DNA of 64,000 nucleotides from Scyliorhinus canicula (lineage: Eukaryota): contig NC_052154.1 of assembly GCF_902713615.1 (NCBI RefSeq), positions 92,387,030 to 92,451,029 on the forward strand, written 5' to 3'. Under the pieces are notes generated by a model, which worked only from the letters and a program-made list of their open reading frames with translations, was not told where the DNA came from and made no database searches. Numbering within the stretch: position 1 is the stretch's first letter; every line of letters begins with the position of its first letter. Shown here piece by piece: positions 1 to 63,136 of this stretch. A program made the translations under genes and the position numbers.

Positions 1-595
1 TGGAAGGAGTTCTTCGTGTCCTTGTGTGCGGTTAATTTTGTTGTTGATTCCGAGGCTTCAAGTTGTATTGGGCCCTGGCCTCGGACACGGTGAAGCTCGG
101 GGACCGGCCGCTTTCCCGCCGCAGACCGGACTCGCTCCGCTGATAGATGCAACGGTGAGCAGGAATGTGAGGCTCGGTGCGGAGTGGGCAAAGAATTTCC
201 TTTGTGTTGATCACATTTCCGCGATGTGGATCCGGGATCTGGGCTGAGACACGGTGCTGAAGGCAAACAGGAGTGAGTGTGCCGGGAGTGAGTCTGAACT
301 CAATGGGATAAAGGTATGAGGCAAGGATGGGGAAAAAGGAATGGGAAGTGAGACCGGAATTGGGAATCGGACCTGGGACTGGGACAAAGCTACAGTTAAG
401 TCCTGTTGCTCTGTTATTGTCACCCGGCTGGTTTAGTGCTCTGGGCTGGCCTGAGAGAGGGATAGGGCTGGAAAGGGCGCCTGCCCCTGGATACTATAGC
501 CTAGGGGAACCCATTGGATGTTCGCTCATTCATGTGTTTTTTGTGCACAGTTTCGCAAGTCGAAAATTGTTCAAATACTCTCGGACTAAATCAAC

Positions 596-43059: not shown

Positions 43060-46000
43060 TGATGCGCTATCAATTGCATTTAAAGACTCAAATCGGTACA
43101 AGAGAGGCTTTATTACAGTTAGATGTTTATCCTCCGACTGCAGCTGGTAGAATGTCAGCTCAGGAGAACGTATACATATTTATAGGGCTCCCTGTGGGCG
43201 GAGCTAGTCGGTAGGGGCTACCGGCGAACCTGTAGTACAGGTACTGCTGTACATCCCCTAATACAGGCACACACACAATTACACAGTGGTGGATCACCAC
43301 ATTCGCCCCCTGTTAAAAATGAGTCCGGCGGGGGTGACGTGGAACTATATACAGAATCCGTGAATTATTTACAGAGGGGAGGGGAAAAAAATTATGTGTC
43401 CAGCTTGTAACCCGGTTCCCGTCAGAGGTTAAATCTGTCCGGCGGTCTGATGGTTCGCTGGGAGCGACGCAACAGTGGTGGTGATGTCTGTACAGGCGGT
43501 GTCGACGGCGTCGGTGCTAGTGGTGTTGGTGCTGGCGGTGTTGGTGCTGGCCAGTTGCTGGATGACTCCGGGAGTGTGCCACAATCTTCCTTGTCCTCTA
43601 GCGTGGGCAGGGGAAGGAGGGATGGACCTGGTGGGGCTGGTGCTGGGAGCGCGGGTGGCGTATGGGTGGGGAGGTGTGTGGGAGTGGGATTCGCACCCGA
43701 AGGAGCCAGGTCCCTGAGCGAGACCGTACCCTGGCGGCCGTCGGGGAACTCCACATAGGCATACTGGGGGTTTGTGCGGAGCAGGCGAACCTTGTCCACC
43801 AAGGGGTCCGCCTTGTGGAGTCGGACTTGCCTACGCAGTAGAATCCGCCCTGGAGCTGCGAGCCAAGTCGGGTGCGACACCCCGGATGTGGGCTTCCTAG
43901 AGAAGGTAAAAACACGTTCATGGGGTGTGTTATTTGTGGCAGTGCACAGTAGAGACCGGATGGAGTGCAATGCATCCAGGAGGACCTGCTCCCAGCGAGC
44001 GGCTGGGAGGTTTCTGGACCATAGGGCCAGCTGGATGGCCCTCCAAACTGTCCCGTTCTCCCTCTCTACCTGCCCGTTTCCCCGAGGGTTGTAGCTGGTC
44101 ATCCTGCTGGAGGCGATACCCCTGCTGAGCAGGAACTGACGCAGCACATCGCTCATGAATGAGGATCCCCTGTCGCTGTGGATGTAGTCGGGGAAACCAA
44201 ACAGAGCGAATAAGGAATCAAGGGCCTTGATGACGGTGGCAGACATCATATCCGGGCATGGGATGGCGAATGGGAACCTAGAGAATTCATCGACCACACT
44301 AAGAATATACGTGTTGCGGTCGGTGGAGGGGAGGGTCCCTTTGAAATCCACACTGAGGCGTTCAAAGGGGTGGAACACTTTCACCAGTCACGCGCGGTCT
44401 GGCCGGTAGAAGTGCAGCTTGCACTCCGCACAGACCTGGCAGTCTCTGGTGACTGTCCGTACTTCCTCGACAGAGTAGGGCAGATTGCGGGCTTTGATGA
44501 GGTGGTACAACCAAGTGACCCCCGGGTGGCAAAGGCTGTTGTGCAGGGCATGGAGCTGGTCCACTTGTGCGCTGGCATATGTACCTCGGGAGAGGGTGTC
44601 TGGGGGCTCGTTGAGCTTGCCAGGGCGATACAAAATCTCATAATTGTAGGGGGAGAGCTCGATTCTCCACTGCAAGATTTTATGATTTTTGATCTTGCCC
44701 CGCTGCGTGTTGTTGAACATGAAGGTTACCGACCATTGGTCAGTGAGGAGAGTGAACCTCCTGCCGGCCAGGTAATGCCTCCAGTGCCGCACCGTTTCAA
44801 CAATTACCTGGGCCTCCTTTTCAACAGACGTATGTCGAATTTCAGAGGCATGGAGGGTGCGGGAAAAGAATGCCATGGGTCTGCCTGCCTGGTTTAGAGT
44901 GGCGGCAAGGGCGACATCTGAAGCGTCGCTCTCTACTTGAGAGGGCAGTGTCTCGTCTACTGCACGCATCCCGGCCTTGGCTGTGTCCGATCTAATACGG
45001 GTGAAGGCATGTTGTGCCTCGGCCATGAGGGGAAATTGAATGGACTGTATCAGTGGGCGGGCTTTGTCCGAGTATTGTGGGACCCACTGGGCATAGTAGG
45101 AGAAGAACCTCAGGCAGCGTTTGAGGGCCTTGGGGCAGTGGGGAATTGGGAGCTCCATAAGGGGGCGTGGCATGTGGTCGGGATCGGGCCCCAGGAGTCA
45201 GTTTTGAACTATGTAGCCGAGGATGGCTAAGCGGTTAGTGCTGAACACACACTTCTCCTTGTTGTAAGTGAGGTTGAGGAGAGATGCGGTGTGGAGAAAT
45301 TTGGCACGGTTGTCGTTGTGGTCCTTCTGGCTCAAGGCCGCAGATGGTGACATTATCTAAGTACGGAAATGTGGTCCGCAGTCCGTACCGGTCAACCATT
45401 CGGTACATTTCTCTTTGGAATACCGAGACCCCATTAGTGACGCCGAAGGGAACCCTAAGAAATTGATAGAGGCGACCGTCCGCATCGAAGGCAGTGTATG
45501 GACGGTCCGATTTGCGGATGGGGAGCTGGTGGTAGGCAGATTTAAGGTCAATCGTTGAGAAGACCCGGTACTGTGCAATCTGATTGACCATATCAGATAT
45601 GCGAGGGAGGGGGTACGCATCAAGCTGCGTGTACCGATTGATGGTCTGGCTGTAGTCCACAACCATCCTGTGTTTCTCCCCAGTTTTAACCACCACCACT
45701 TGGGCTCTCCAGGGACTGTTGCTGGCCTCGATAATACCCTCCCGAAGCAGCCGCTGGACTTCGGACCTGATGAAGGTCCTGTCCTGGGTGCTGTACCGTC
45801 TGCTCCTGATGGCGACGGGCTTGCAACCTGCAGTCAGATTGGCAAAGAGGGAGGGAGGGTCAACCTTGAGGGTTGTGAGGCCGCAAACGGTGAGTGGGGG
45901 TAGGGGCCCGCCAAATTTGAGGGTGAGACTCTGGAGGTTACATTGGAAATCCAGGCCCAGTAATAGTGTTGCACAGAGATTGGGGAGAATGTACAGGCAG

Positions 46001-47622
46001 AAACCGCTGAATTCAATGCCTTGTATGGTGAGGTTGACCACACAGAAACCCCGGATCGGGACAGAGTGGGATCCAGAAGCCAGGGAGATCCGCTGATGGT
46101 GGGATGGACCACAAGGGAGCAGCGCCTTACCATGTCCGGGTGGATGAAGCTATCGGTGCTCCCGGAGTCCAGTACGCAGAAGGTCGCGTGGCCATTGATT
46201 AGCACCGTCGTCAAAGCGGTAGCCAGGTTTTGAGGACGGGACTGGTCCAGCATCATGGAGGCGAGCAGCGGGCGATCGTCCGAGGAGTCCGATGAGGAGA
46301 GGCAGCGGTCCGGGTCCAGCGGTCCAGTCCCGAGGGGAAGATAAAATGGCGGTGTCCGAGGGACCTGTGGGGGAGAAAATGGCAGCGCCCATGCAGTGCA
46401 TGATGCGGGGGCGGGGCAAGATGGAGGCGCCCATGGTGCGCACAATGTGGGGGTGGGGCAAGATGGTGGCGCCCACTGGCCACACGTGGACCTGGGGGAG
46501 ACGATGGCGGCACCCACTGGTCGCACGTGGCCCCAGGAGCAGAGGATGGCAGTGCCCATTTTACGATCAGCTGAGGGAAGGGAGAGAAGTCGGGCGTGAT
46601 AGCGGTAACCGAGTGGGCCTGGCGCACCGCCGCAAAGTGGCCCTTCTTACCGCAGGATTTACAGGTGGCGGCGTGGGCTGGGCAGCACTGGCGGAGGTGC
46701 ATCTGATGGCTGCAGAAGTAGCAGCGGGGACCCCCAGAGTGCGCAGTGTGGCGAGCAGCGCAGGCAAATTGTGCGGGAGCGGCCCCAGTCGAGGGGGTCA
46801 GTTGCGGGGTCCATGAGGGGTAGGATGGGTGAGCCGCGCGGCGAGAAGCAACCATCATGGAGAGCGCTAAAGTTTTTGTCGCCGTTAGGTCGAGCGTGGC
46901 CCCTTCCAGCAGTCATTGCTGGATGGGGTCCGATGCAATCCACGTCACGAATGCATCATGCATGAAGAGATTGGAATGTTCCGTGACTGTGACGGCCTGA
47001 CAGTCACAGTCCCGTTCGAGAGGGATTAGGGCCCACCAGAAGTCTTCAATCGACTCACCAGGTAGTTGTACGCGAGTGGCGAGTACGGCCTTGCAAATAG
47101 AGTGTTCATCTTCTGGACGTAGTTTTCTTGAAGGAGTTCCATGGCACCTGCGTAATTTAGCGCATCCTGTATCAATGGGAACACGCTGGAGCTCAACCTT
47201 GAGTAGAGAAGTTGGATTTTCTGAGCTCCTGTCGGCTCGGGATTTGCTGAGTTGATATAGGCCTCGAAGCAAGCCAGCCAGTGATTAAAGTCTTTTCTGG
47301 TGTTTGGCGATTGCGGATCCAGCTGCAAGCAATCTGGTTTGATCCTGATGTCCATGATGCGGAAAATCTAACTGTAATAAATTGATGCGCTATCGAGCAC
47401 TTAAAGACTCGAATTGGTACAAGAGAGGCTTTATTACAGTTAGATGTTTATCCTCCGACTGCAGCTGGTAGAATGGCAGTTCAGGAGAACTCATACATAT
47501 TTATAGGGCTCCCTGTGGGCGGAGCTAGCCGGCAGGGGCTACCGGCAAATCTGTAGTACAGGTACTGCTGTACATCCCCTAATACAGGCACACAAACAAT
47601 TACACAGTGGTGGATCACCACA
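43060..47622 (-). mobile_element. Full-length Gypsy/Ty3 LTR retrotransposon (4563 bp), frameshifted
   Basis: LTRs 47383-47622 and 43060-43301 have TG...CA ends and differ by ~13 substitutions plus a 2-nt indel. Imperfect 5-bp TSD GCATC/GCATG; PPT just inside the 3' LTR. Domain order gag, CCHC, PR (LDSGS), RT (YPLP, PFG, YLDN), RH, IN (HHCC, DDE). Confidence 0.95.
43422..47355 (-). pseudogene. gag-pol of the Gypsy element, broken across several frames
   Basis: ORF pieces 47026-47355 and 46913-47272 (gag), 46253-46858 (zinc knuckle), 45834-46559 (PR), 45235-46041 (RT), 44388-45173 (RH + HHCC), 43422-44384 (IN core). Confidence 0.9.
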
Positions 47623-48469
47623 GCATGCAAGAAAGGAAAATCTGTAATTTGGGGGATTTCGCACACTAATGTTCTCTGCCAAACATTCTTCCCTCCGTAC
47701 ATCGACCATGTATTAATAAATGCAGCAAGGAACCTGCAGCCGCTTTCTCCTACTGCACACGTGTCCGTGCTTATTTTTCTACAAACCTTATTCGTCGCAA
47801 GTAGTGATTATTTGCCTGTGTCCCGGCTGATTGAAGCTGCAAGTCATTAAAATCTGCAGCTAGTGTCAACCGCTCTTATGCCAAACTGAACAACAGAGGC
47901 GTTTCATTTGGGTGAAGCATGTGAATGGTCCGTATTGCTGAGGCTATTGATAGTGGAAGCACGAACGTTATCGAACAGTATTTATTGTCTACCTGGTTAC
48001 TTTTAGCAATTATCAAATCTACAAGTGACGTAAAGAAACAACATGAACACCCAGGTATTGTCCTCCGCCTGGTTTACGTTGGGTACGGAGCAGTCTCCCA
48101 GGCCACAGCCGGTGATGTAGAGATTATCAATGAAATGATGGGTCACTGAGCTTGGAATCTTCAGAATTGTCCACATTGGGGTTCGAAACATTAATCCGTC
48201 TCATCATGGGGAAATTGTACGCACATGCCACTTTTCATCCCAGCTTTCCTCAGGGCAAGAGTTCCTGAGGCGAGTTCGGCATGGTTGAATTTAAACTCTT
48301 AAATTGTTCTCCATGGCCTCGTGTGGCAAATGGACAACTGTTTTGTTAAATCTCACCAAAGAGAAAGGAAAGGCATGTTCGCGGCTCAAAGACAGGATGT
48401 TGCGCCTTCATGGTGACATTTTAGGACCTCCGCCTTCTGACAGCAATCAGTCTGATCAAGTGGTTCAGG

Positions 48470-48524
48470 ATGTTGGTCAGTGTTAGAATTCAGTGCATTG
48501 CTGTTCTGGCGATCATTTTCACAG
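48470..48524 (+). CDS. Exon 1: signal peptide [18 protein letters not shown](G)
   Basis: Hydrophobic leader; phase-1 donor g|gtacct; 158-bp intron. Confidence 0.8.
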
Positions 48525-51500
48525 GTACCTGCTCCTATTATACACTATTTTCTCATTGAACCGTGTAGTTACGTTACCTTTTCTTGATACATGTGGCATT
48601 ATCTTTACAGATGTTTCCTGACCCGCTCGCCCTCGGTCTTTCCCTCCAATACTACCATATAATTATTCAATTTTCCCCATAGGCCCGGGTGGAACTTCAG
48701 TCAAAGTCAGTCAACTCCCTGATAGGACGACCTCAATCACCGGTACAAACGTTTCCTTTCATTGCTCGCTTCCCTTATTTCAACGCGGCCCACGTGTGAA
48801 TGTAAACTGGTGGAAAAAGGGCGATGATAACTATCTAAGATCGAGACAAAATGACAGGATGATAACTGGCTTCAAAACTAAATTCAGCGGCTTCCTTCAG
48901 ATAATCAATGTCACTGTGCAGGACTCAGGAGTGTACTATTGCACTGTCACCCATGAAGGCAAAACAGCTGGAAATGGAACCGGGTCTCATTTAGAAGTAT
49001 GGGGTACGTATCAGAAAAAGGTGAACGAGATTCCTGTAACTGTGATATTCCATAATTCGAAACATTTCAACGTTGTGCTTTGAAAGATTCCAATTGTAAA
49101 TTCAGTTTCACGATTAATATATAGACATGCAAATTCCACTGATGATTGTTACATGCTGATGCATGTTACGATATTTGACAAATATTGATCAAGACGAACA
49201 TTATCCGTTAACTGATCTCAACGTGTACTCAACAGGCTATTGAAGTAAAAAATCCCATATTGATTACAGTCCAATTTCCACAGTAATGGACAGTAGCGCA
49301 TATCTGAGAAAGATAACGCGCAACTCTTGTCCTATGTCATGGTTTGATTTTCCTACGTTGCTTACGGACGACCGAGCGCTTCTAATAGGATCAGATAGTC
49401 CATATTTATAAGTTAGTGGTCTATATCTTAAGCGTATATTTGTAATAGTTGAAGTTCACAACGTGTCATTTTGAACCTACCCCTCCACATATTTTCCCTA
49501 TCACTGACTTCTTGTAAATATGAGATCATCCAGGATCGTGGGGACGAACTCTCCCTGACTTGCTTAAGTATACTTTCCAATCCGTTTTCAGATTCAACTG
49601 GATGGCATTGGCGCGCAGCGGAACAACCATTCAGAATAGAACATTTGGCGAGATTTTAACCGCGTGGGCCATCGCTTTCATCTGCGTGCTTTTCTTTTGC
49701 CTGTTGATTATAGTTTAAATTATGACCGAAATAGTAGCAACACAAGTGAGCATGTCACTTAGGATGTAACTACTCATAATACAATATATATATTTATCCT
49801 CCCACCACCCTACTCCAGTATGCGACCAGCAATGGGTTGGAACACAACATTTATCTGGTAACCTAGCTTCACGGTATTAGCTGTGGCTGGGCTAGCATCA
49901 CACTCCTCCTCCTCTGAGGCACACGGATCTTGGTTCAAATCCCACTCCAGGAGTTGAGCATGAATATCAAGGCCGACATTCCTGTGCAATACCCCAGGAG
50001 TCCAACATTGTCGGAGGTGCCGTTCTTCGGATGAGAATTTAGGCTGAAGCCCACTCTGCCGTCCGGGTTGATGTGTAAATCCCATAACACAATTCTGAAG
50101 AAGGGAAGGGAAATGATTCCCGGTATCCAGGTCAATATTGCTCCCTCAATCAATATCACAAAAACGGATGATCTGGCCATGGTCACATTGCTGTTCACAG
50201 ATTGGCTGCCAAATGTTCAGTATTACAACAGTAACTCCAATTCCAATGTTCTGCATTGGCTGTGAAGCCCGTTGAGATGTCCGGTAGTGGTGAACAGTGT
50301 TATATAACCACCAGTATTTCTATTCTTTGTTGTTCTAGTTCCACCAACTCCACTGAAAATTAACTCTCAGCCAACTGAAAAGGATTCATCTGCACGTCTG
50401 ACTGTTCTGTGTGCCACAGCTCATTTTTCCCTGGAGAATATCAGCTTCACTTGGTATAAGGATGGCATCAAAACTGCAGCAGGGATAAATACCATCATTA
50501 AACCCAACGCCAATGGACTATATGAAGCTTCTAGCCGGTTGCAAGAGACGCAACCTGCCCACACCCCAACTGTTTATACCTGCCTTGTCTCTCACAGTAC
50601 GCTGCAAATTCCAGCTATAGCCACTCATGTTGTCACCTCTCCCAACACAGGTAAGACGTTCGATATCATGATGGAAGTGTACAGGATTGGAAATGGTTAT
50701 TTAGCTCAGCCTTCCTGTGCAGCCTCTTTGTTTCAGCTGTCAAATACATTTTCCCCAAAGTAACATTTCCTACACAACACAGAAATCAGTCTCCTTAACC
50801 CTCATATCCGATTATCTTTGAAAATTCCAATACTGTATATGTCATTCAAAACAAGCTTTCAGATAATAAAAGAGTTATGCAGACTCAAAACGTTAACTCT
50901 GTTTTTCATCAGAGATGCTACCAGAGCTCCAGAAATGGCAGCTCACCGTCCTGTTCTCATGTCCGCATGTCCATCCTTGGCCTGTTGCAATTTTCCAGTG
51001 AAGCCCCATGCAAACTTACAATTAGGTACGTTACAGCCTTTCGGACTTAACATTGAGTTCAACAACATCACACTTTGAACTCTCTACTCCAGCGTGGCCA
51101 CACTTTTTTTCTATCAATGTATTTTTATTTTCATTCCTTCCATTGATCTGTTTTTCCCTCACCACTGACCCCCCACTACCACTCAACTTGGCCAACTGTT
51201 CCCAGTTGCTCTTTAACACACTGCTCAACTTTGTTCTGCCATTCACACATTTTAATATCTTTATGTGCCACTATCAGCACCCTTCTTAGCCTTAATCATC
51301 CCCATTGATATTCCTTTTGTCTTCTGTCCTTGACATCTTTGTCTATCTCCATCTATCGCTGCCCCCTAACCAGCCCCACCACTCCACAACCCCCCCCCCC
51401 CCCCCCCCACCGCCACTACATTCTAAATCTGATACCATTTCCAACTGTCTCTAGCTTTGACACAGAGTCATCCAGACGTGAAGCATTCGTTCCCTTTTCT

Positions 51501-54500: not shown

Positions 54501-57500
54501 TCACCCTACTCAAACCCACATATCCACCCTATACCCGTAACCCAACACCCCCCCCCCCCCCCCCCTTAACCTTACTTTTATTAGGACACTACGGGCAATT
54601 TAGCATGGCCAATCCACCTAACCTGCACATCTTTGGACTGTGGGAGGAAACCGGAGCACCCGGAGGAAACCCACGCACACAGCGGGAGGACGTGCAGACT
54701 CCACACAGACAGTGACCCAGCCGGGAATCGAACCTGGGACCCTGGAGCTGTGAAGCATTTATGCTAACCACCATGCTACCCTGCTGCCCCTAAGCTTCGT
54801 CCAGATCATTTATGTATATCACAAACAACAGTGGTCTGAGCACGGATCCCTGTGGAACACCACTAGTCACCTTTCTCCATTTTTAGACACTCCCTTCCAC
54901 CACTACTCTTTGTCTCCTGTTGCCCAGCCAGTTCTTTATTCATCTAGCTCGTACACCCTGAACCCCATACGGCTTCACTTTTTCCATCAACCTGCCATGG
55001 GAAACTTTATCAAATGCTTTACTGAAGTCCATGTATATGACATCTACAGCCCTTCCCTCATCAATTAACTTTGTCACTTCCTCAGAGAATTCTATTAGGT
55101 TTGTAAGACATGACCTTCCCTGCACAAAAGCATGCTGCCTATGACTGATAAGTCAATTTTCTTCCAAATGTGAATAGATCCTATCCCTCAGTATCTTCTC
55201 CAACAGTTTGCCTACCACTGACGTCAAGCTAACAGGTCTATAATTCCCTGGATTATCCCTGCTACCCTTCTTAAACAAAGGGACAACATTAGCAATTCTC
55301 CAGTCCTCTGGGACCTCACCCGTGCTCAAGGATGCTGCAAATATATCTGTTGAGGCCCCAGCTATTTCGTTCCTCGCTTCCCTCAGTAACCTGGGATAGA
55401 TCCTATCCGGTCCTGGGGACTTGTCCACCTTAATGTCTTTTAGAATATCCAAAACCTCCCCCTTCCTTATGCCCACATGACCTAGAGTATTTAAACATCC
55501 ATCCCTAGCCTCAATATCCATCATGTCCCTCTCCTTGGTGAATACCAGAGTGGAGATATGTCCATCCTGGCTGTTGGAGATTGTGGTTGAATCTGACTGT
55601 TTGTGTTAATGACACATATGCTTTATGGATGCCGTGTCATGAGGGTTTTTTAAAATTCATTCGTGGGATGCCGCTGTCAGTGACAAGGTCAGCATTTATT
55701 ACCCTTGCAGTCCCTGTGATATCGGTACACTCACAGTGCTGTAAGGGAAGGGGGTTCCAGGACTTTGACCCAGTGACAGTGAATGAAGGACAATATACTT
55801 CCACATCAGGCTGGTGAGTGGCTTGGAGAACTTTTAGGTGTTCCTAGCTCTGGTGAAAATCAATCTCATCCAGCACGATGGTGGTGCCTGACAATAATGT
55901 GAAGTCAGGACTGTGTCTCCACAAGGACTGTGCAGTGATCTGTACCAATATTGTATTTTACAGATGCATCTTTGTCAGGTGGAATTGCGAGGACAAGGTA
56001 ATTCATGATATTTTCCGCTAATGAATGTCATGACCGCAGGCTGCTGACTCAGCCCAGCCTGCTATGTCCTTTAGGCATTCACTAGGATTCCTAGATTACT
56101 AGTTCAGTAATATCATGTGAAAGGTACGAACAAGGTGGTCGCGGAAATAATGCTCCCATTTGTGGGTCAGTCCGGCACATGGGGAACTGCTTTAAAATAA
56201 GACGTTGCCCTTTTAGTGCAGAGGTAAGGATTTTTTTTGTCTCAGAGGGTTGTACGACTTCGGAACTCGCTGTCTCAGAAGGCGATGGAGGCGGGTTCAT
56301 TAAATATTTTCAAAGTGGAGGGAGATAGACTATTGTTAGACAAGGGAATCAAAGTTTATCAGGTAGTTGGGAATGTCGAATTCATAATAATCTTTATTTT
56401 TGTCACAGGTAGGCAATTAAGTCACTGTGAAAAGCCCCTAGTTGCCACACTCCAGCGCCTGTTCATGTGCATTGAGGGAGAATTAAGAATGTCCAATTTA
56501 TCTAACAGCACTTCTTTTGGGACTTGTGGGAGGAAACTGGAGCACCCGGAGGAAACCCACGCAGACACAGGGAGAACACGCAGAACAAACAGTGACCTAA
56601 GCCAGGAATTAAACCTGATACCCTGACGCTGTGAAACAACAGTGATAACAACTGTACCGCCCAATTTGAAACACAAGCAAATCAGCCTTGATCATACCGA
56701 ATGGCGATGCAACCTCGAGGGGATGAATGGCCTACTACTGCTCCTATGCCTTGCCTTCACACCATTACACTGCATTAATACAAATGATTGGACTGTTTGA
56801 ATATTTCCAGTGCTGCAGGGTTTGGCCCTATTTTATTGAATGAACTGTGTACGGTTTTTCATTTAAATATTTTATTTTATTCTTGCAGATGGTCACATCG
56901 CACGTTTCTTACTGATTTATGCAACTGCAGGAGGCGGATTTGTATCTCTGGTGCTGGGTCTCATTATTGTGAAGTGTTGCGTGACAAACAAAAGAAACAG
57001 TATGAAAGACTTTTTCCTTCTCGCTAAAATAAGCACAGCCCTTAACAAGAGTGGGAGAGCGAGCAAACAAAATCATGTTACATGTAAAGAGGGAGTTCGT
57101 TGATTGCAACTGAACAGTTCAAACAATCGCCTATATCACAGGAACAGAGATAATTGGGAATATTTCCTGAGATTTAGAATGTCAGATTTACTCCTGTAAA
57201 CTTCATTTACACATATTTCAACAATGATTTAGTGAATATGTTTTTTAAATCATTATCGATGTAACATTGATTTGATCAAGGTGTGACCTGATAGAAATCT
57301 ACAAGATTATGAGAGGCATGGATGGAGTGGATGGGCAGGCACTCTTTCCCAGGGTGGAGGGGTCAGTCACTATGGGGCATAGTTTTAAGGTCTGTGGGGC
57401 AAAGTTTAGAGGAGACGTGCAAGGCAGGCTTTTTACAGAGAGGGTGGTGAGTGCCCGGAAGGCGTTGCCAGGGGAGGTTGGCAAAGCAGATATATTAACG

Positions 57501-60500
57501 GCATTCAAAAGTCATCTTGACATGGATAAGATGGGTATAGAGGGATATGGCACTAGGAAATGCTGAGGGTTTTGGCCAACGGTGGCATCATGACCGGTAT
57601 AGGCTTGGAGAGCCGAAGGGCCTTTTCCTGTGCTGTATTGTTCTTTGTTCTTTGAATTTTTAATTTGGGTATAATTTTCCACGACCCTCCACCACCCCTG
57701 CAGCCAAACGTTCAATGTGTGCTTTATTGTAAAATCTCCTATCATTGCCTGCAAACTTACCCTTATAGGCCACTGAGTGTAAAAGTGTTTATTCTGCCCA
57801 TGCAATTTAAGAAGCACCCTCTCACTGCCAGGCCTGCAACAGAGCAATAAGGCTCAGATTGTGAAAAACTGATTGGAAATCACACAATTCCAAACGTGAT
57901 CTGGAGTTAATTTTATGCTTTACACTGAATCTACTAGAAATGTCCTTCTGAGCTCTGTAAATGTTCATTCTAAAGTCGTGAACTTCATTAATTTCCAGGT
58001 GTGCAGAGAGATGGTGAAAGATCCGATTATTCCGGACATCAGGTATGTTTCCACAATCGATTCTAATGCACTTCAAATGTAAATATAAATATACGCACAG
58101 CAATGATTTAACCTATTTAAATAGGGCAGCATGGTAGTACAGTGGTTAGTACTGTTGTTTCACAGCTCCAGGGTCCCAGGTTCGATTCCTGGCTTGGGTC
58201 ACTGTCTGTGCAGAGTCTGCACATTCTCCCCATGTCTGCGTGGGTTTCCTCTGGGTGCTCCGGTTTCCTCCCACTGTCCAAAGATGTGCAGGTTAGGTGG
58301 ATTGGCCATGATAAATTGCCCTTAATGCCCAAACAGATTGGGTGGGTTGCTGGGTTATGGGGCTACAGGGATAGGGTGGAGTTGTGGGCTTAAATGGCAT
58401 TCTCTTTCCAAGTGCCGGTGCAGACTCGATGGGCCAAATGGCTTCCTTCTGCACTGTAAATTCTATGTAAATTGCTATGTTTTATTCTTGCGTTCAAAAT
58501 TCAGAAGAAATGAAACAGTGTGAATTCTGCAGTTGATCTGTAGAAGCGGTCATTGTCAATAGATCAAAGGCACCTGATTTATAACTCTATCTGGCTGTGA
58601 AGAAGCATGTTGCATAAAACTTAACATCCATTGAATAGTAATGGGGAAACCTACTTCTCCCTCCTGTGCACAGTGGGCAATGTGATGACGGCTGTACCAT
58701 ACCCATTCAGCAATTTTAAACCAGAGCGCACAATTTCAAATCCTACCACGATATTTTGATACTTAAGTTCAGTTTCAAAAAATTTATCTGATCAAAATAA
58801 GGTAGATATGCAAAAATACCCGTGAATTTGTCATGTTTCTGCAAAAGCACAACTGGTTAATTAATGTCTGACAGCACGTCTACCTTCTTGAAATTATGTG
58901 TTCTTGACTCAAGTCCATAATGCCTGGTCTAACTCTTAAATTAATTCTGAAATTTCCTGACATGCCCATCACCGCTTTCTCAGGGCATTGACTGTTAGAA
59001 CTGATTGTTGGCCTTGTCAGGAAGGTCACAGCGTGAGAGAGTACAAGATCCTGCAGGATATCACAAGCTGAAGATACCAGATTTGCTGTTGAATGTTTCT
59101 GTGGGTGCTCAGGCAATGGAAGTGGAACTTTGGATCAAGTTGCTGCAGTGCGAATAACCACAAGGAGACAGGTGCCGAGAAATTTGTATTAATTCCCATT
59201 GCCTTATTCTCCAATCAGGTATTCCAAATGAATTTGGAACAATCCCACCCAACCCAAGTAAGAGTATTATCTAATTGGTTATTGGGATGTTTGGATGTAC
59301 AAAGGGATCTGGGTGTCCTTGAACACCAGTCAATGAAAGTGATGAGGCAGATGTAGCAAGTAATTTTGAAAGCAAATGGTATTTTGTTCTTCATTGCAAG
59401 AGGATTTTAGTTCCGAAGACGGGAACTCTTACTACAGTCATATAGGGCCTCGGTGAGTCCACACCTGGAGTACTGCGTGAAATTTTGGTCTCCCTTCCTA
59501 AGAAATGATACACTTGCCATAGGGCGAGTGCAGAGGAGGTTCACTAGGCTGAGTCCGGGGTTGACGGAACTGTTCTAAGAAGAGACATGGGTTCGACTGG
59601 CCCTATAATGATCAGAGCTTGGATGGATGAGAGGACATCTGTTTGAAACCTGTAAATTTCTAACAGTGCTGGACAGACTAGATGCTGGGAGAATTATTTC
59701 CCTGGTGGCACTCTAGAACTCGGAGACACAGTCTCAGGATATAGGGTAGACCATTTAGGACTCAGATGAGGGAAATTCGGTAGAATTCTCTACTACAGAA
59801 GGTTAAGGAGGCCAAGTAAACAAATGTACTCAAGTAATAGAAATTTAGATTTCAATGGCACCAAGGGGCATAGGAAGGAAGTGGGGATATGACAGTGAGA
59901 CAGAGAATCAGCCATGTTCGTATTGAATGGTGGAGCACTCTCTACGGGCAGAATGGTGCACTCCTTTTCCTAGTTTCTCTGTTTCTATGTGTTTGCCTTG
60001 AACACAATTGGATGGGGTGGGATCGTGGTATGGGATTTGTTGCCACACAGGCCATGAGGCCAACCAGGCACCATAAAGCTTGTTGGAACACAGTGCCATG
60101 GACCCTGGTTTGGGTCACTGTCTGTGTGGAGTCTACACATTCTCCCCGTCTCTGCGTGGGTTTCCACCAGGTGCTCCAATTTCCTCCTACAAGTCCCAAA
60201 AGATATGCTTGAAATGAAAATGAAATGGCATGTTAGGCGAATTGGACATTCTTAATTCTCCTGAACAGCTGCCGGAGTGTGGTGGCAACGGGATTTTCAC
60301 AGTAATTTCATTCCATTTCAAAGTAAAAATAATAATCTTTATGAGTGTCGTAAGCCTACTTGTGACACTAATAAACATTATTATTATTATTACTTTGCCG
60401 CTATTTTCCATTTATTGACTTCAATTGACAGAAATATGTTGCCATTTACTCAAACATTTGCAATACACTGGCTTTTTCATCAACTTTCTGGTCAGGGCAG

Positions 60501-63136
60501 AGAGTAACATCCTTGAATATCACCCCGTCAACAGCTGAATTCAGTAAGATCTGTTTTCTGTGATAAATGTTCACATTTACTTTCCATTTGTATCTGTGTT
60601 TCTAATTCTTCCCAGTGCTCATCAGAGTGTACCTTAGTGCAAGAGCCATGGAAGTAGATATTACTGAGAAATATTGATATATTGCCGGCGACCAGAGTTC
60701 AACTCCGGTCTTGGATGCCTGTCTGTGTGGAGATTGCCCCGTGCATTCTCCCCATGTCTGTGTTGGATTCCACCGAGTGCTCCGGTTTCTCCCCAGCGTC
60801 CAAAGATGTTCAGGTTAGGTGGTTTGGCCATGCTAAAAAAAATGGCCTTAAGATGTGCAGGTTAAATGAGGTTATGCGAATGGTGTCAGGGAGAGGGCCG
60901 AGGTAGAGGACTCTTTTGGAGGGTTGGTGCAAACTCGATGGGCCAAATCGTAATCTTCTGCACTATATGGATTCCATGGAATATAACAATTCCTGTTTCA
61001 TTGCACAACACAGTTAAAAATATATATAATTTGATACACATTATACATGTAGACGTGGATATTGCGACATTATGGATGAATAGAAATATGGTGGTGCGTG
61101 TAGTATGGCATTTCGCGGTCATGTTGTAATGTAAACTCGTTTGCTCCATGATTGCGGATTACTCTTTGCGGGTTGTCTGAACATCAGAACTGATCTGATT
61201 ACCAGCCACGCTCCTCTCTGGGTTAATTCAATTCCTTCCAGTCTATAATTGCTGCAGAAATTTTCCAATCATGCCTCGCGTTCAATTTCATAAAACCATC
61301 TCAATGGCATCCCTACTTTTGCTGTAGCATCCGTATGAATTCAACCAGCGACTCCCATTAATGGCATGCAAGGATCAAGCGTGATCCCGCATTCTCTATT
61401 TTGGGAATTTCTCGGGATTTCATTAACTTCGACTGAATATTCGCAGCAATCCCAGACAACCAAATGGAAGAGCATCTTCAGCTCTTTACACCGGTTCTCC
61501 TAGAATTCTGGTAGCCACGCAGTCATGTATGATCAGGAGAGCGGTTGTCGCTCTGAAACGGTGAACGCAGATTTCCGCTTTTCCCGCCCGCTTGTTCATG
61601 AAGCAATGTTTGGGCGGAGCATCCAAATGGAAATCCGGTGGGTGAGATACACCTACCCAGGAACTTTCTTCGGGTTGATTTCAGTGCTAGGAAAATAGGC
61701 CAGATGTGGTTTCCATCAGTGCCTCCTCCAGATTTTCCATTCCTCGCTCTCCGCTGACGATGCCTTAAACCCAGGCGGTAAACTCTTTCGTCACTACCCC
61801 AGAAACCCGACTCAGTCCGTTCGCTGGGCGCTGGTGACGCAGAGATGGGAGTCAGGCGAGATTCAACGAATAATAGTCACTGGCACCCATTCATTTAATT
61901 CTGGATGCTGGAGCTACAGTTTAGGGATCTGCTTGCATTGTTGCTTGAAGCATCCGGTCGAGATTATTCGTCCCAACGACATGACAAGAGATGTTTTTCT
62001 TTGTCTTTCCGTCCGTTCAGGGGGATATCCAAACGTTGGCGCCTTATGCCGGACGAGATGCGACTGACTCCCAGAAGGCCGCAATACGTAAAGAAAGGAC
62101 AGCATATATGCAGGTAGGCTTAAAGAGTCGATCAAAAGATGCTGAATAACAGTCATTAACAAATATAACGGTGTATTGAGAAACATCTCTTTAATACTGC
62201 TTTGGTACTTTGGTCGGCTTTAAAACTAATCGGAATGGCAACTACAGCTCTGTTTGTCCTCGGGGTCGCTACGTGAGAATTGAGAACAATGTATACACTG
62301 ACACTCTAGTGCAATCGTAAGGGTCGTCTGCATTGTCTAAAGTGCCGGCTTTCAGGTGATAAGTTTTCACAGCATCCCTACAGTGCAGAGAGAGGCCATT
62401 TGGTCCATCGAGTCTGCACCCACCCTCTGAAACAACACCCTACCTAGACCCACTCCGCTACCTGCACGTTTTTAAACACTGAGGGGCAATTTTAGCATGG
62501 CCAATCCATGTAACCTGCACACATTTGGACCCAGAAGAAATCTACGCAGACACGCAGAAAAAGTGAAAACTCATCACTGATAGTGACCAAGGCGAAATTG
62601 AACCAGGGTCACTGTGCACCTGTGCCGCCCTGAGACCATATTTACCTGGTAAAGTGGATCTAATGCCACTTATTTGGGAGATGACCAAGGCTTATCTTCT
62701 GTGGCCTGATCAGTGACTTGGTCGTTATCACTGAAACAAAACATTACCACCATCTTGCTGTTAGTGGAATTTTACTGTGAACATTTCCGCTGTCAGGCTT
62801 GCCCCAGTGACTAGCTGCACCACAACAAGTACTTCATTGATTGTAAAACACGTCACGAGGTCGTGACATGCAAGGTTTTGTTTTTCCATTTCAATGACTG
62901 AGTTTAACTTTAGAGTATAAACAAGTAAAATATGAAACTAATTATATTCCCAAACATTGATTTCACAGACCAAACCAAGACGACCTGACAATGCGCTGAC
63001 CTACGCTGCTCTAGATATGTCAGGGTCAAAGAAATCAGCAAATCCTAATTATAAGCATACAAGCACGGAGTATGCTCAGCTAAGGATTGAAAAACAAAGA
63101 GCAGATGTTATCCACACGGAACCGAAAGCGACGTGA
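48470..63136 (+). CDS. Ig-superfamily receptor, leader-V(J-joined)-C1-TM-ITIM/ITSM, 336 aa predicted; CDS join(48470-48524,48683-49003,50339-50650,56889-56999,57999-58042,62969-63136)
   Basis: All five introns are GT-AG with phases 1,1,1,1,0. The joined CDS is 1011 nt and open from ATG to TGA, and the domains fall in the order expected of a type I receptor. Confidence 0.85.
48683..49003 (+). CDS. Exon 2: V-set domain with integral J-like G strand
   Basis: [10 protein letters not shown]...NVSFHCS...VNWWKK...[37 protein letters not shown]; acceptor ccccatag, donor g|gtacgt. Confidence 0.92.
49860..50320 (+). mobile_element. DeuSINE (SacSINE1/AmnSINE1-like), diverged
   Basis: tRNA-like ggttcaaatccc followed by tgtcggaggtgccgttcttcggatgag...gtcacattgctgtt...attggctgtgaagc, matching the recalled Deu domain. 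Confidence 0.75.
50339..50650 (+). CDS. Exon 3: C1-set Ig domain
   Basis: VPPTP...[23 protein letters not shown]...[10 protein letters not shown]...[10 protein letters not shown], with the C1 hallmarks C, F-x3-I-x3-W and YxCxVxH; phase 1/1, donor g|gtaaga. Confidence 0.92.
51560..52615 (+). mobile_element. Degraded CR1 RT fragment interrupted by a MITE
   Basis: LGPQLFT- and PHLE-like remnants on both sides of 51972-52534. Confidence 0.6.
51972..52534. mobile_element. Harbinger/PIF-like MITE (563 bp)
   Basis: 18-bp TIRs GGGCTGGATTC(A/T)CTGATC with one mismatch; 3-bp TSD TAT. Confidence 0.85.
52760..53175 (-). mobile_element. Nested CR1 3' ends
   Basis: Two 3' UTR types, (ATAC)n- and (AAGAACA)n-tailed, one inside the other. 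Confidence 0.75.
53470..55545 (-). mobile_element. CR1 LINE RT + 3' UTR with inserted SINE
   Basis: [26 protein letters not shown] and [10 protein letters not shown] motifs. Confidence 0.9.
54428..54790 (-). mobile_element. HE1/V-SINE-like SINE
   Basis: Full length, reverse orientation. Confidence 0.9.
56385..56662 (-). mobile_element. SINE with HE1-type head and (ATT)n-type tail, inserted in a CR1 3' fragment
   Basis: Head and core at 56515-56662, tail at 56385-56510. Confidence 0.75.
56889..56999 (+). CDS. Exon 4: transmembrane segment (D)[36 protein letters not shown]
   Basis: Strong acceptor attttattttattcttgcag; ~22 hydrophobic residues then a basic stop-transfer; phase-1 donor a|gtatga. 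Confidence 0.85.
57275..57655 (+). mobile_element. CR1 LINE 3' end
   Basis: [10 protein letters not shown]...FTERVV peptide and ctttgttcttt tail. Confidence 0.8.
57999..58042 (+). CDS. Exon 5: short cytoplasmic exon (S)[14 protein letters not shown]
   Basis: Acceptor ttaatttccag and donor cag|gtatgt; converts phase 1 to phase 0 as needed to join exons 4 and 6. Confidence 0.7.
58122..58480 (+). mobile_element. HE1/V-SINE-like SINE, full length
   Basis: Head, core and tail. Confidence 0.9.
59270..59985 (+). mobile_element. Degraded CR1 RT C-terminus/3' UTR
   Basis: ccacacctggagtactgc (PHLEYC) and 3' UTR similarity. Confidence 0.7.
60680..60980 (+). mobile_element. Diverged HE1/V-SINE-like SINE
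   Basis: Core and tail recognisable. Confidence 0.65.
62360..62630 (-). mobile_element. Diverged HE1/V-SINE-like SINE
   Basis: Reverse head, core and tail with deletions. Confidence 0.65.
62969..63136 (+). CDS. Exon 6: terminal cytoplasmic exon [55 protein letters not shown]
   Basis: Acceptor tgatttcacag, phase 0. ITIM LTYAAL (62996-63013), ITSM-like TEYAQL (63065-63082), TGA at 63134-63136. Confidence 0.85.
   Translation, partial: TKPRRPDNALTYAALDMSGSKKSANPNYKHTSTEYAQLRIEKQRADVIHTEPKAT

Follow-up and report, generated by a model that had tools for sequence, protein, structure and literature searches.

Non-rearranging VJ domains joined to a C1-type constant domain are thought to be the source material of antibodies and T-cell receptors (TCRs), and recent work singles out the shark genes UrIg and UrIg2 as surviving relics. 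A 64,000-nucleotide stretch of the catshark Scyliorhinus canicula (NC_052154.1, positions 92,387,030 to 92,451,029, forward strand; hereafter the window, to whose positions all coordinates refer) contains an immunoglobulin (Ig) V-set exon with a built-in J-like G strand at 48683–49003 on the plus strand. The question raised by this locus is whether such an exon descends from the unsplit ancestral V that the RAG transposon interrupted or from a germline-fixed VJ join, the two origins considered in a first-pass annotation of the sequence. We put at about 80% the probability that this exon supplies the ligand-binding domain of a non-rearranging germline VJ-C1 inhibitory receptor, a type I membrane protein of 367 amino acid residues encoded by seven exons, whose V was never split and which belongs to a paired-receptor family. 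The VJ-C1 layout also serves a large, expressed family of inhibitory- and activating-type receptors in sharks, rays, and chimaeras; the catshark gene is one copy of this auto-annotated family, interesting but not unique.

The V exon is flanked by an AG acceptor at 48681–48682 and a GT donor at 49004–49005, is in phase 1 at both ends, and encodes a 106-residue domain with the core Cys27-Trp42-Cys86 and the sequence DSGVYYC. Pfam assigned it to the V-set (E = 1.4e-9) and the exon at 50339–50650 to the C1-set (E = 5e-9). These boundaries, together with germline-joined transcripts, bore out the initial description of a V domain and J-like G strand in a single exon that ends in a phase-1 donor. A HMMER search run exhaustively against 1.84 billion representative proteins showed that the exon is 100% identical to residues 20–125 of the S. 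canicula RefSeq protein XP_038663089.1, in which the gene is already predicted under the name ‘tyrosine-protein phosphatase non-receptor type substrate 1-like isoform X3’ (SIRP-alpha-like).

The gene model was built by homologue-guided tblastn with a Heterodontus homologue and a splice-aware search (Table 1). It comprises seven exons and a 367-amino-acid open reading frame without stops. All internal exons are bounded by AG and GT, exon 1 is followed by a GT donor, and exon 7 is preceded by an AG acceptor. A six-exon model was rejected, because the transmembrane exon ends in phase 1 and the exon following it in that model starts in phase 0; the 44-nt exon at 57999–58042 is therefore required. 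The full-length product shares 57–61% identity with Heterodontus homologues, and its last exon shares 70% with the Heterodontus tail (tblastn). This tail carries an immunoreceptor tyrosine-based inhibitory motif (ITIM; LTYAAL) and a motif of the immunoreceptor tyrosine-based switch type (ITSM; TEYAQL), the two tyrosines lying 23 residues apart. The gain for annotation is a complete seven-exon model with a membrane anchor, compared with two retrieved RefSeq isoforms without one. Isoform X2 reads past the C1 donor at 50650 (50651–50763) and ends in ...SNTFSPK, and isoform X3 terminates in a short alternative C-terminal exon, the peptide of which looks like a repeat-derived frame. In the bin spanning the donor at 50650, RNA word depth drops from about 12 to about 3, so that read-through seems to be minor.

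RNA contigs of three runs from two studies were compared with the window at 48300–51300. The joint from leader to V (48524 to 48683) was found in one run, in a contig beginning at 48449, and that from V to C1 (49003 to 50339) in three runs from the two studies. One 1415-nt contig continues across 50650 and covers the first 30 bases of the transmembrane exon, joining C1 to it. The differences seen within the V exon were two synonymous changes and the conservative substitution L11V; no variation in the FG loop or the J-like strand and no junctional diversity was observed in these contigs, which drop rare variants. The V exon belongs to a real, transcribed catshark gene.

The register of the J-like strand was examined in an alignment of 71 distinct V domains of relatives. 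C27, W42, and C86 are invariant, Gly is near-invariant at positions 98 (67/71) and 100 (69/71), as are L103 and V105, position 97 is Asn in 61, and position 101 is Ser or Thr in 70, giving the conserved motif N-G-T-G-S-x-L-x-V. Position 96 is Gly in only 38 of the 71, and position 95 is merely hydrophobic. DSSP broke the G strand exactly at residues 98–100 in both AlphaFold models (predicted local distance difference test, pLDDT, 88). Because G98 and G100 are near-invariant, G96 is found in only about half of the relatives, and the strand breaks at 98–100, the register was set on N97: the catshark motif N97-G-T-G-S-H-L-E-V matches F-G-x-G-T-x-L-x-V, and the equivalent of the J-encoded Phe/Trp is Asn97. 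The distance from this motif to the exon end is the same as in lambda J. Ala had initially been taken as the residue standing in for Phe/Trp before GxG, with eight residues after DSGVYYC; this register was off by two residues, and the equivalent of the third complementarity-determining region (CDR3) has ten. The features of a VJ-type V-set domain, namely the Cys-Trp-Cys core, YxC, the GxG bulge, and the L-x-V end, are all present.

Family-wide, the motif N-G-[TS]-G-[ST]-x-L-x-V occurs in frame in 65 of the 71 V domains of predicted proteins. The loop from Cys to the Phe/Trp position has 10 residues in 60 of these 65, Asn occupies that position in 57, and an N-x-S/T sequon starts there in 52. 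Loop diversity across paralogues, proposed at the outset as a check, was seen in the residues at the FG tip, which differ between paralogues (entropy 2.7 bits), and not in the near-fixed loop length.

The J-encoded Phe/Trp and the Gln of the WYxQ motif are core interface residues of the antibody Fv. The C strand of the catshark V domain reads NWWKKG, in agreement with the earlier WWKK in place of WYxQ, so that the interface positions hold Lys45 for the Gln and Asn97 for the Phe/Trp within a V-C1 architecture. The pairing surface, already described as atypical, is more so than had been stated, since both interface residues are replaced. As one replacement is a usually glycosylatable Asn and the other a Lys, pairing of the V domain in the manner of an antibody Fv is improbable. 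The conserved Asn97 is probably glycosylated, judging from its sequon. AlphaFold monomers and dimers had been suggested as a further check; the monomer displayed the break of the bulge, and the V-C1 ectodomain homodimer prediction scored 0.13, which gives no verdict and is not evidence either way. Among Callorhinchus and other family members (P0018, P0019, P0014, and others), many chimaera proteins end the G strand in ...L-T-V-C where the catshark protein has Trp106, and the extra Cys at their V/C1 boundary could form an interchain disulfide as in UrIg2.

Recombination signal sequences (RSSs) were searched for by a heptamer/nonamer scan of both strands with spacers of 12 or 23 ± 1, compared with dinucleotide shuffles. 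No RSS above chance was detected in 47500–51500, where the best match (13/16 at 47603) was reached by 18% of shuffles, and none scored 12 or more inside or beside the V exon, in agreement with the first-pass annotation. A six-frame search of the 64 kb with family hidden Markov models (HMMs) detected one V at 142.6 bits, one C1 at 137.7 bits, and a single J-like motif, which belong to the same gene, and no second V, second C1, or separate J. RSS-flanked V or J segments near the same C1, which would have pointed to a secondary join, were absent from the 48 kb upstream and the 13 kb downstream. The separate RSS-flanked V and J segments of Ig and TCR loci are thus not seen here, and the junction in the transcripts is the germline one. 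A perfect heptamer, which reads CACAGTG on the minus and CACTGTG on the plus strand, is located at 48912–48918 in V-T-V-Q codons of the E-F turn; it lacks a nonamer (4/9 at best), is away from the CDR3 position, and is regarded as cryptic and at chance level. The Callorhinchus milii homologue has an RSS-like match scoring 14/16 (nonamer 8/9, 22-nt spacer, heptamer 6/7) in its leader intron (L001, 10056–10093), a score that about 1% of shuffles reach; it was judged to be a chance match because it coincides in part with the leader splice donor and has no counterpart in the catshark gene.

Relatives were collected by word-indexed, and hence word-limited, searches with the Heterodontus homologue and a 32-sequence profile. 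They retrieved dozens of family proteins, whose sources comprise at least 20 species among sharks, rays, and the elephant shark. Profile-search scores were at least 142 bits for the chondrichthyan family and at most 52 bits thereafter, where the matches are salmonid butyrophilin-like proteins, and every V-C1 relative looked up had a chondrichthyan source. The nearest V domains outside the family belong to reptile multi-V ‘pIgR-like/titin-like’ proteins and to one toad protein without C1. Automatic names of the relatives are inconsistent, comprising SIRP-alpha-like, Ig lambda-like, tapasin-related, CD276, B7-H6-like, MHC class II beta-like, and TCR beta-like. A search of SIRP-like, VJ-C1, and PRARP literature in a limited collection yielded no paper on this family of cartilaginous fish. 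In an IQ-TREE phylogeny of 63 V-C1 ectodomains of the family, the catshark gene fell into a clade (support 100/98) that also contains six paralogues of the horn shark, two carpet sharks, and four rays; sharks and rays are mixed in several further clades, and other paralogues of the catshark lie in different parts of the tree. One ray paralogue (P0007) has two C1 domains.

A homologue of Callorhinchus milii (P0157 and its DNA) has a leader, a single V exon followed by a GT donor, a C1 domain, a transmembrane segment, and small cytoplasmic exons, and its FG loop and J-like strand are almost identical to those of the catshark gene. Since the chimaera homologue shares the single-exon VJ and nearly the same FG loop, the joined form likely pre-dates the split of elasmobranchs and holocephalans. 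The constant loop length and the near-identical chimaera strand look like one old conserved design rather than recombination junctions. No Ig or TCR V was found among the short proteins in the 150 best HMMER matches from the 1.84 billion representatives, as judged from family-HMM scores and, for a subset, source names. Together with the family-wide single exon, the lack of an RSS, and the conserved non-canonical motif, this favors a never-split VJ lineage of the same general kind as CD79b, CD8, NKp30, and SIRP over a product of V(D)J recombination. Of the two origins proposed at first, the unsplit one therefore fits better, though not to the point of making this exon the very ancestor interrupted by the RAG transposon. 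The gene has many paralogues, with which it forms a lineage-specific paired-receptor family.

Of 95 predicted family proteins, counting isoforms, 40 carry ITIM/ITSM tails, and 12 combine a transmembrane Arg or Lys with a short tail that lacks an ITIM, which is the activating type. By sequence, the family carries the signature of paired inhibitory and activating receptors of the Ig superfamily, and the catshark gene is predicted to be of the inhibitory type. The occurrence of both types likens the family in mode to SIRP, KIR, and other paired receptors. In the proposed mechanism, the V domain would bind a ligand, Src-family kinases would phosphorylate the two tail tyrosines, and the phosphorylated tail may recruit SH2 phosphatases of the SHP-1/SHP-2 type and thereby damp cell activation.

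Several points weigh against the inhibitory receptor as reconstructed here. The exon at 57999–58042 and the last two exons rest on homology and not on the reads examined, and the inhibitory mechanism is inferred from motifs only. RefSeq isoforms X2 and X3 end without a transmembrane segment, so that some of the products may be secreted or aberrant. One 1415-nt RNA contig bypasses the leader and joins an exon at 126–154 straight to 48683 over a distance of 48.5 kb. The ATG at 147 in this exon is out of frame with V; the exon is probably non-productive and probably represents either an alternative, non-coding first exon or read-through from the upstream zinc-finger gene. The phylogeny covered V-C1 ectodomains of the family only, and the C1 profile of the family scored best, at 51.7 bits, on an Ig lambda constant domain. 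The same pattern would result from one germline join that preceded the separation of chimaeras and elasmobranchs, improbable as we consider it.

The V-only model was nearest to CD79b (E = 4e-9 over 106 aligned positions), CD8beta, and NKp30 (template modelling, TM, score 0.77), and the V domains of TCR beta, Ig kappa, and IgW followed at similar E-values; in VIA-align, IgNAR V, NCAM d1, basigin, and CD79b tied at Z 13–14. A word-indexed search with the V profile for V-only references gave only three matches. The V domain is short, and its modeled structure does not place it in a rearranging family. CD79b, CD8beta, and NKp30 (NCR3), the best V-only neighbors, share the single-exon V with a J-like G strand, but they have no C1, differ in their tails (an ITAM in CD79b, adaptor use in NKp30), and show 20–24% identity. 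The V-C1 model aligned to CD276, PD-L1, SIRP-alpha/beta, B7-H6, tapasin-related protein, butyrophilins, Ig lambda, and TCR beta. SIRP-alpha/beta were narrowly at the top (TM score by query 0.65–0.69, identity 23–24%), and CD276, PD-L1, B7-H6, and Ig lambda had 20–21% identity at similar E-values. Two-domain fold searches and the V-only VIA search tied many unrelated Ig proteins (Fab light chains, B7, nectins, IgNAR V, NCAM), which confirms the fold and leaves the family unassigned. For the C1 exon, UrIg2 was the top entry of the Protein Data Bank (PDB) by summed score, with three domains at 12.6–17.7 bits. In the PDB profile searches, multi-domain proteins dominated the ranking, so that only per-domain scores are usable there. 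The C1 domains of SIRP matched as well (SIRP-alpha d3, 29 bits; 2wng, E = 1e-5). A cytoplasmic-tail atlas search with a family member gave a best score of 0.82 and was uninformative.

Among the alternatives, we regard it as unlikely that the gene is a true SIRP-alpha orthologue, that is, the catshark counterpart of the CD47 receptor after loss of one C1 domain. Its RefSeq name, the top TM score and identity of the V-C1 model, and the match of the C1 exon to 2wng point in this direction, as do the shared VJ-type V, C1, and tail motifs of the ITIM and TxYxx[VIL] types. SIRPs likewise have a non-rearranging single-exon V whose J-like G strand bears a hydrophilic residue for the J Phe, a C1-set domain, a transmembrane segment, ITIM-type tail tyrosines, and both inhibitory-type and charged-transmembrane activating-type members. 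Human SIRP-alpha presumably also resembles the catshark protein in tail spacing and in its LTYADLDM, compared with LTYAALDM in the latter. However, SIRPs are characterized by a VJ-type V followed by two C1-set domains and two ITIM/ITSM pairs, whereas the catshark gene has one V exon, one C1 exon, and one pair. CD276, PD-L1, B7-H6, and Ig lambda follow by a small margin, no SIRP appeared in the 30 best V-only matches, no tetrapod SIRP was retrieved in the word-limited profile search, and clear paralogues carry the inconsistent names listed above. With dozens of paralogues in each genome, the family is a large expansion specific to one lineage, found here among cartilaginous fish alone, and differs from a small conserved locus. 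The gene may work like SIRP-type paired receptors, but its kinship to true SIRPs, at 23–24% identity, is weak and need not amount to membership in the SIRP family proper.

It is rather unlikely that the family is an independent relic of the pre-RAG VJ-C1 precursor, standing beside UrIg and UrIg2, nearer to the constant domains of Ig light chains and UrIg than to SIRP, and kept, as a large paired-receptor family, only by cartilaginous fish. If it were, its V, with a glycan at the site of the J Phe, would illustrate the form of an unsplit, non-pairing ancestral V, and the claim of UrIg and UrIg2 as the only such relics would be weakened. PRARP genes, non-rearranging VJ-C1 transmembrane genes of chicken and other bony vertebrates, are discussed as relics of the antigen-receptor precursor and resemble the catshark gene, by description only, in having VJ, C1, and a transmembrane segment. 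PRARP is cited in PMC10751288. UrIg and UrIg2 are published non-rearranging VJ-C1 genes of sharks (PMC12227049; PDB 9dmx; PMC10751288), and both are expressed most in the liver, UrIg2 also in the gill, with UrIg protein found in the extracellular matrix (PMC12227049). UrIg2 of the nurse shark has nine C domains, forms disulfide-linked homodimers, and has a V without a G-strand bulge (PMC12227049). The catshark gene shares with them the split leader, the single-exon VJ followed by C1-type domain sequence, and the lack of an RSS. It differs in having one C1 domain, where these genes have three or more, and, compared with UrIg2, in its ITIM/ITSM tail and the bulge predicted at G98-G100; the catshark gene is neither UrIg nor UrIg2.

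An ancient secondary germline join is improbable: a rearranging Ig/TCR-type gene, such as a light-chain-like cluster, would have been joined by RAG in the germline before elasmobranchs and chimaeras separated, and would later have gained its transmembrane segment and ITIM tail and expanded into an innate receptor family. Such joins are common in sharks, whose lambda light chains are entirely germline VJ-joined (PMC12227049), and this, together with the best match of the C1 profile to the Ig lambda constant domain, keeps an Ig-derived origin alive. UrIg2 as the top PDB entry for the single C1 sequence, the NCBI label ‘Ig lambda-1 light chain-like’ of many members, and the phase-1 donor typical of J segments add to it. 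Germline-joined shark Ig genes also have contiguous V and J, a phase-1 intron, and one C1 domain. They nevertheless have RSS-bearing relatives, the canonical FGxGT, and chains that are secreted and pair with heavy chains, whereas the catshark gene has Asn for Phe, is membrane-anchored and of the inhibitory type, and has no RSS-bearing relatives among those seen. No split member was observed either, and the window contains no RSS above chance and no other V or J. The absence of identified Ig/TCR V domains among the short proteins of the 150 best HMMER matches, within the scope given above, the V-only model lying no nearer to TCR/Ig V than to CD79b, CD8beta, and NKp30, the near-fixed length of the FG loop, and the Asn for Phe/Trp and Ser for Thr that deviate alike family-wide argue against such a join.

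That the gene is a decaying, non-functional copy and its transcripts noise is hardly credible: although it is buried in retroelements, RefSeq X2 and X3 end without a transmembrane segment, one of them inside a repeat-like exon, and one RNA contig starts from an out-of-frame upstream exon, the gene has seven open exons with canonical splice sites and 367 codons, spliced contigs in three runs from two studies, the full-length Heterodontus identity given above, and V-exon differences that are synonymous except for the conservative L11V.

Table 1. Coordinates of the exons and motifs of the catshark VJ-C1 receptor gene in the window
Feature	Position	Strand	Description	Basis
Exon 1, leader	48470..48524	+	ATG at 48470; most of the signal peptide; phase-1 GT donor (split leader)	XP_038663089.1 residues 1-19; RNA joint
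Exon 2, V-set	48683..49003	+	Cys27 48763-65; Trp42 48808-10; Cys86 48940-42	Pfam; RefSeq identity; AlphaFold pLDDT 88
J-like motif N-G-T-G-S-H-L-E-V in exon 2	48973..48999	+	Asn97 starts an N-G-T sequon	Family conservation; DSSP break at 98-100
Exon 3, C1-set	50339..50650	+	YTCLVSH; phase 1/1	Pfam; RNA joint; family C1 HMM 137.7 bits
Exon 4, stalk and transmembrane	56889..56999	+	Juxtamembrane Cys-Cys	tblastn with Heterodontus homologue; RNA contig enters first 30 bases
Exon 5, cytoplasmic	57999..58042	+	44 nt; phase 1 to 0	Splice-site and homology search against Heterodontus peptide GVRNDGERS...; predicted, not seen in reads
Exon 6, cytoplasmic	62021..62113	+	Phase 0/0	tblastn homology; open frame
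Exon 7, last coding	62969..63136	+	ITIM LTYAAL 62996-63013; ITSM-type TEYAQL 63065-63082; stop 63134-36	
Alternative far-upstream 5' exon	126..154	+	GT donor at 155	Loose end of one RNA contig; exact single match in window

The surroundings of the gene were also inspected. A long open frame with about ten tandem C2H2 zinc fingers and HTGEKPF linkers occupies 590–1624 on the plus strand, placing a ZNF gene beside the far-upstream 5' exon. A Ty3/gypsy-type retroelement with integrase, reverse transcriptase/RNase H, protease, and gag-like frames lies directly upstream of the receptor gene at 43400–47400 on the minus strand, and the introns of the receptor gene are filled by LINE reverse transcriptase fragments and SINE-like repeats.

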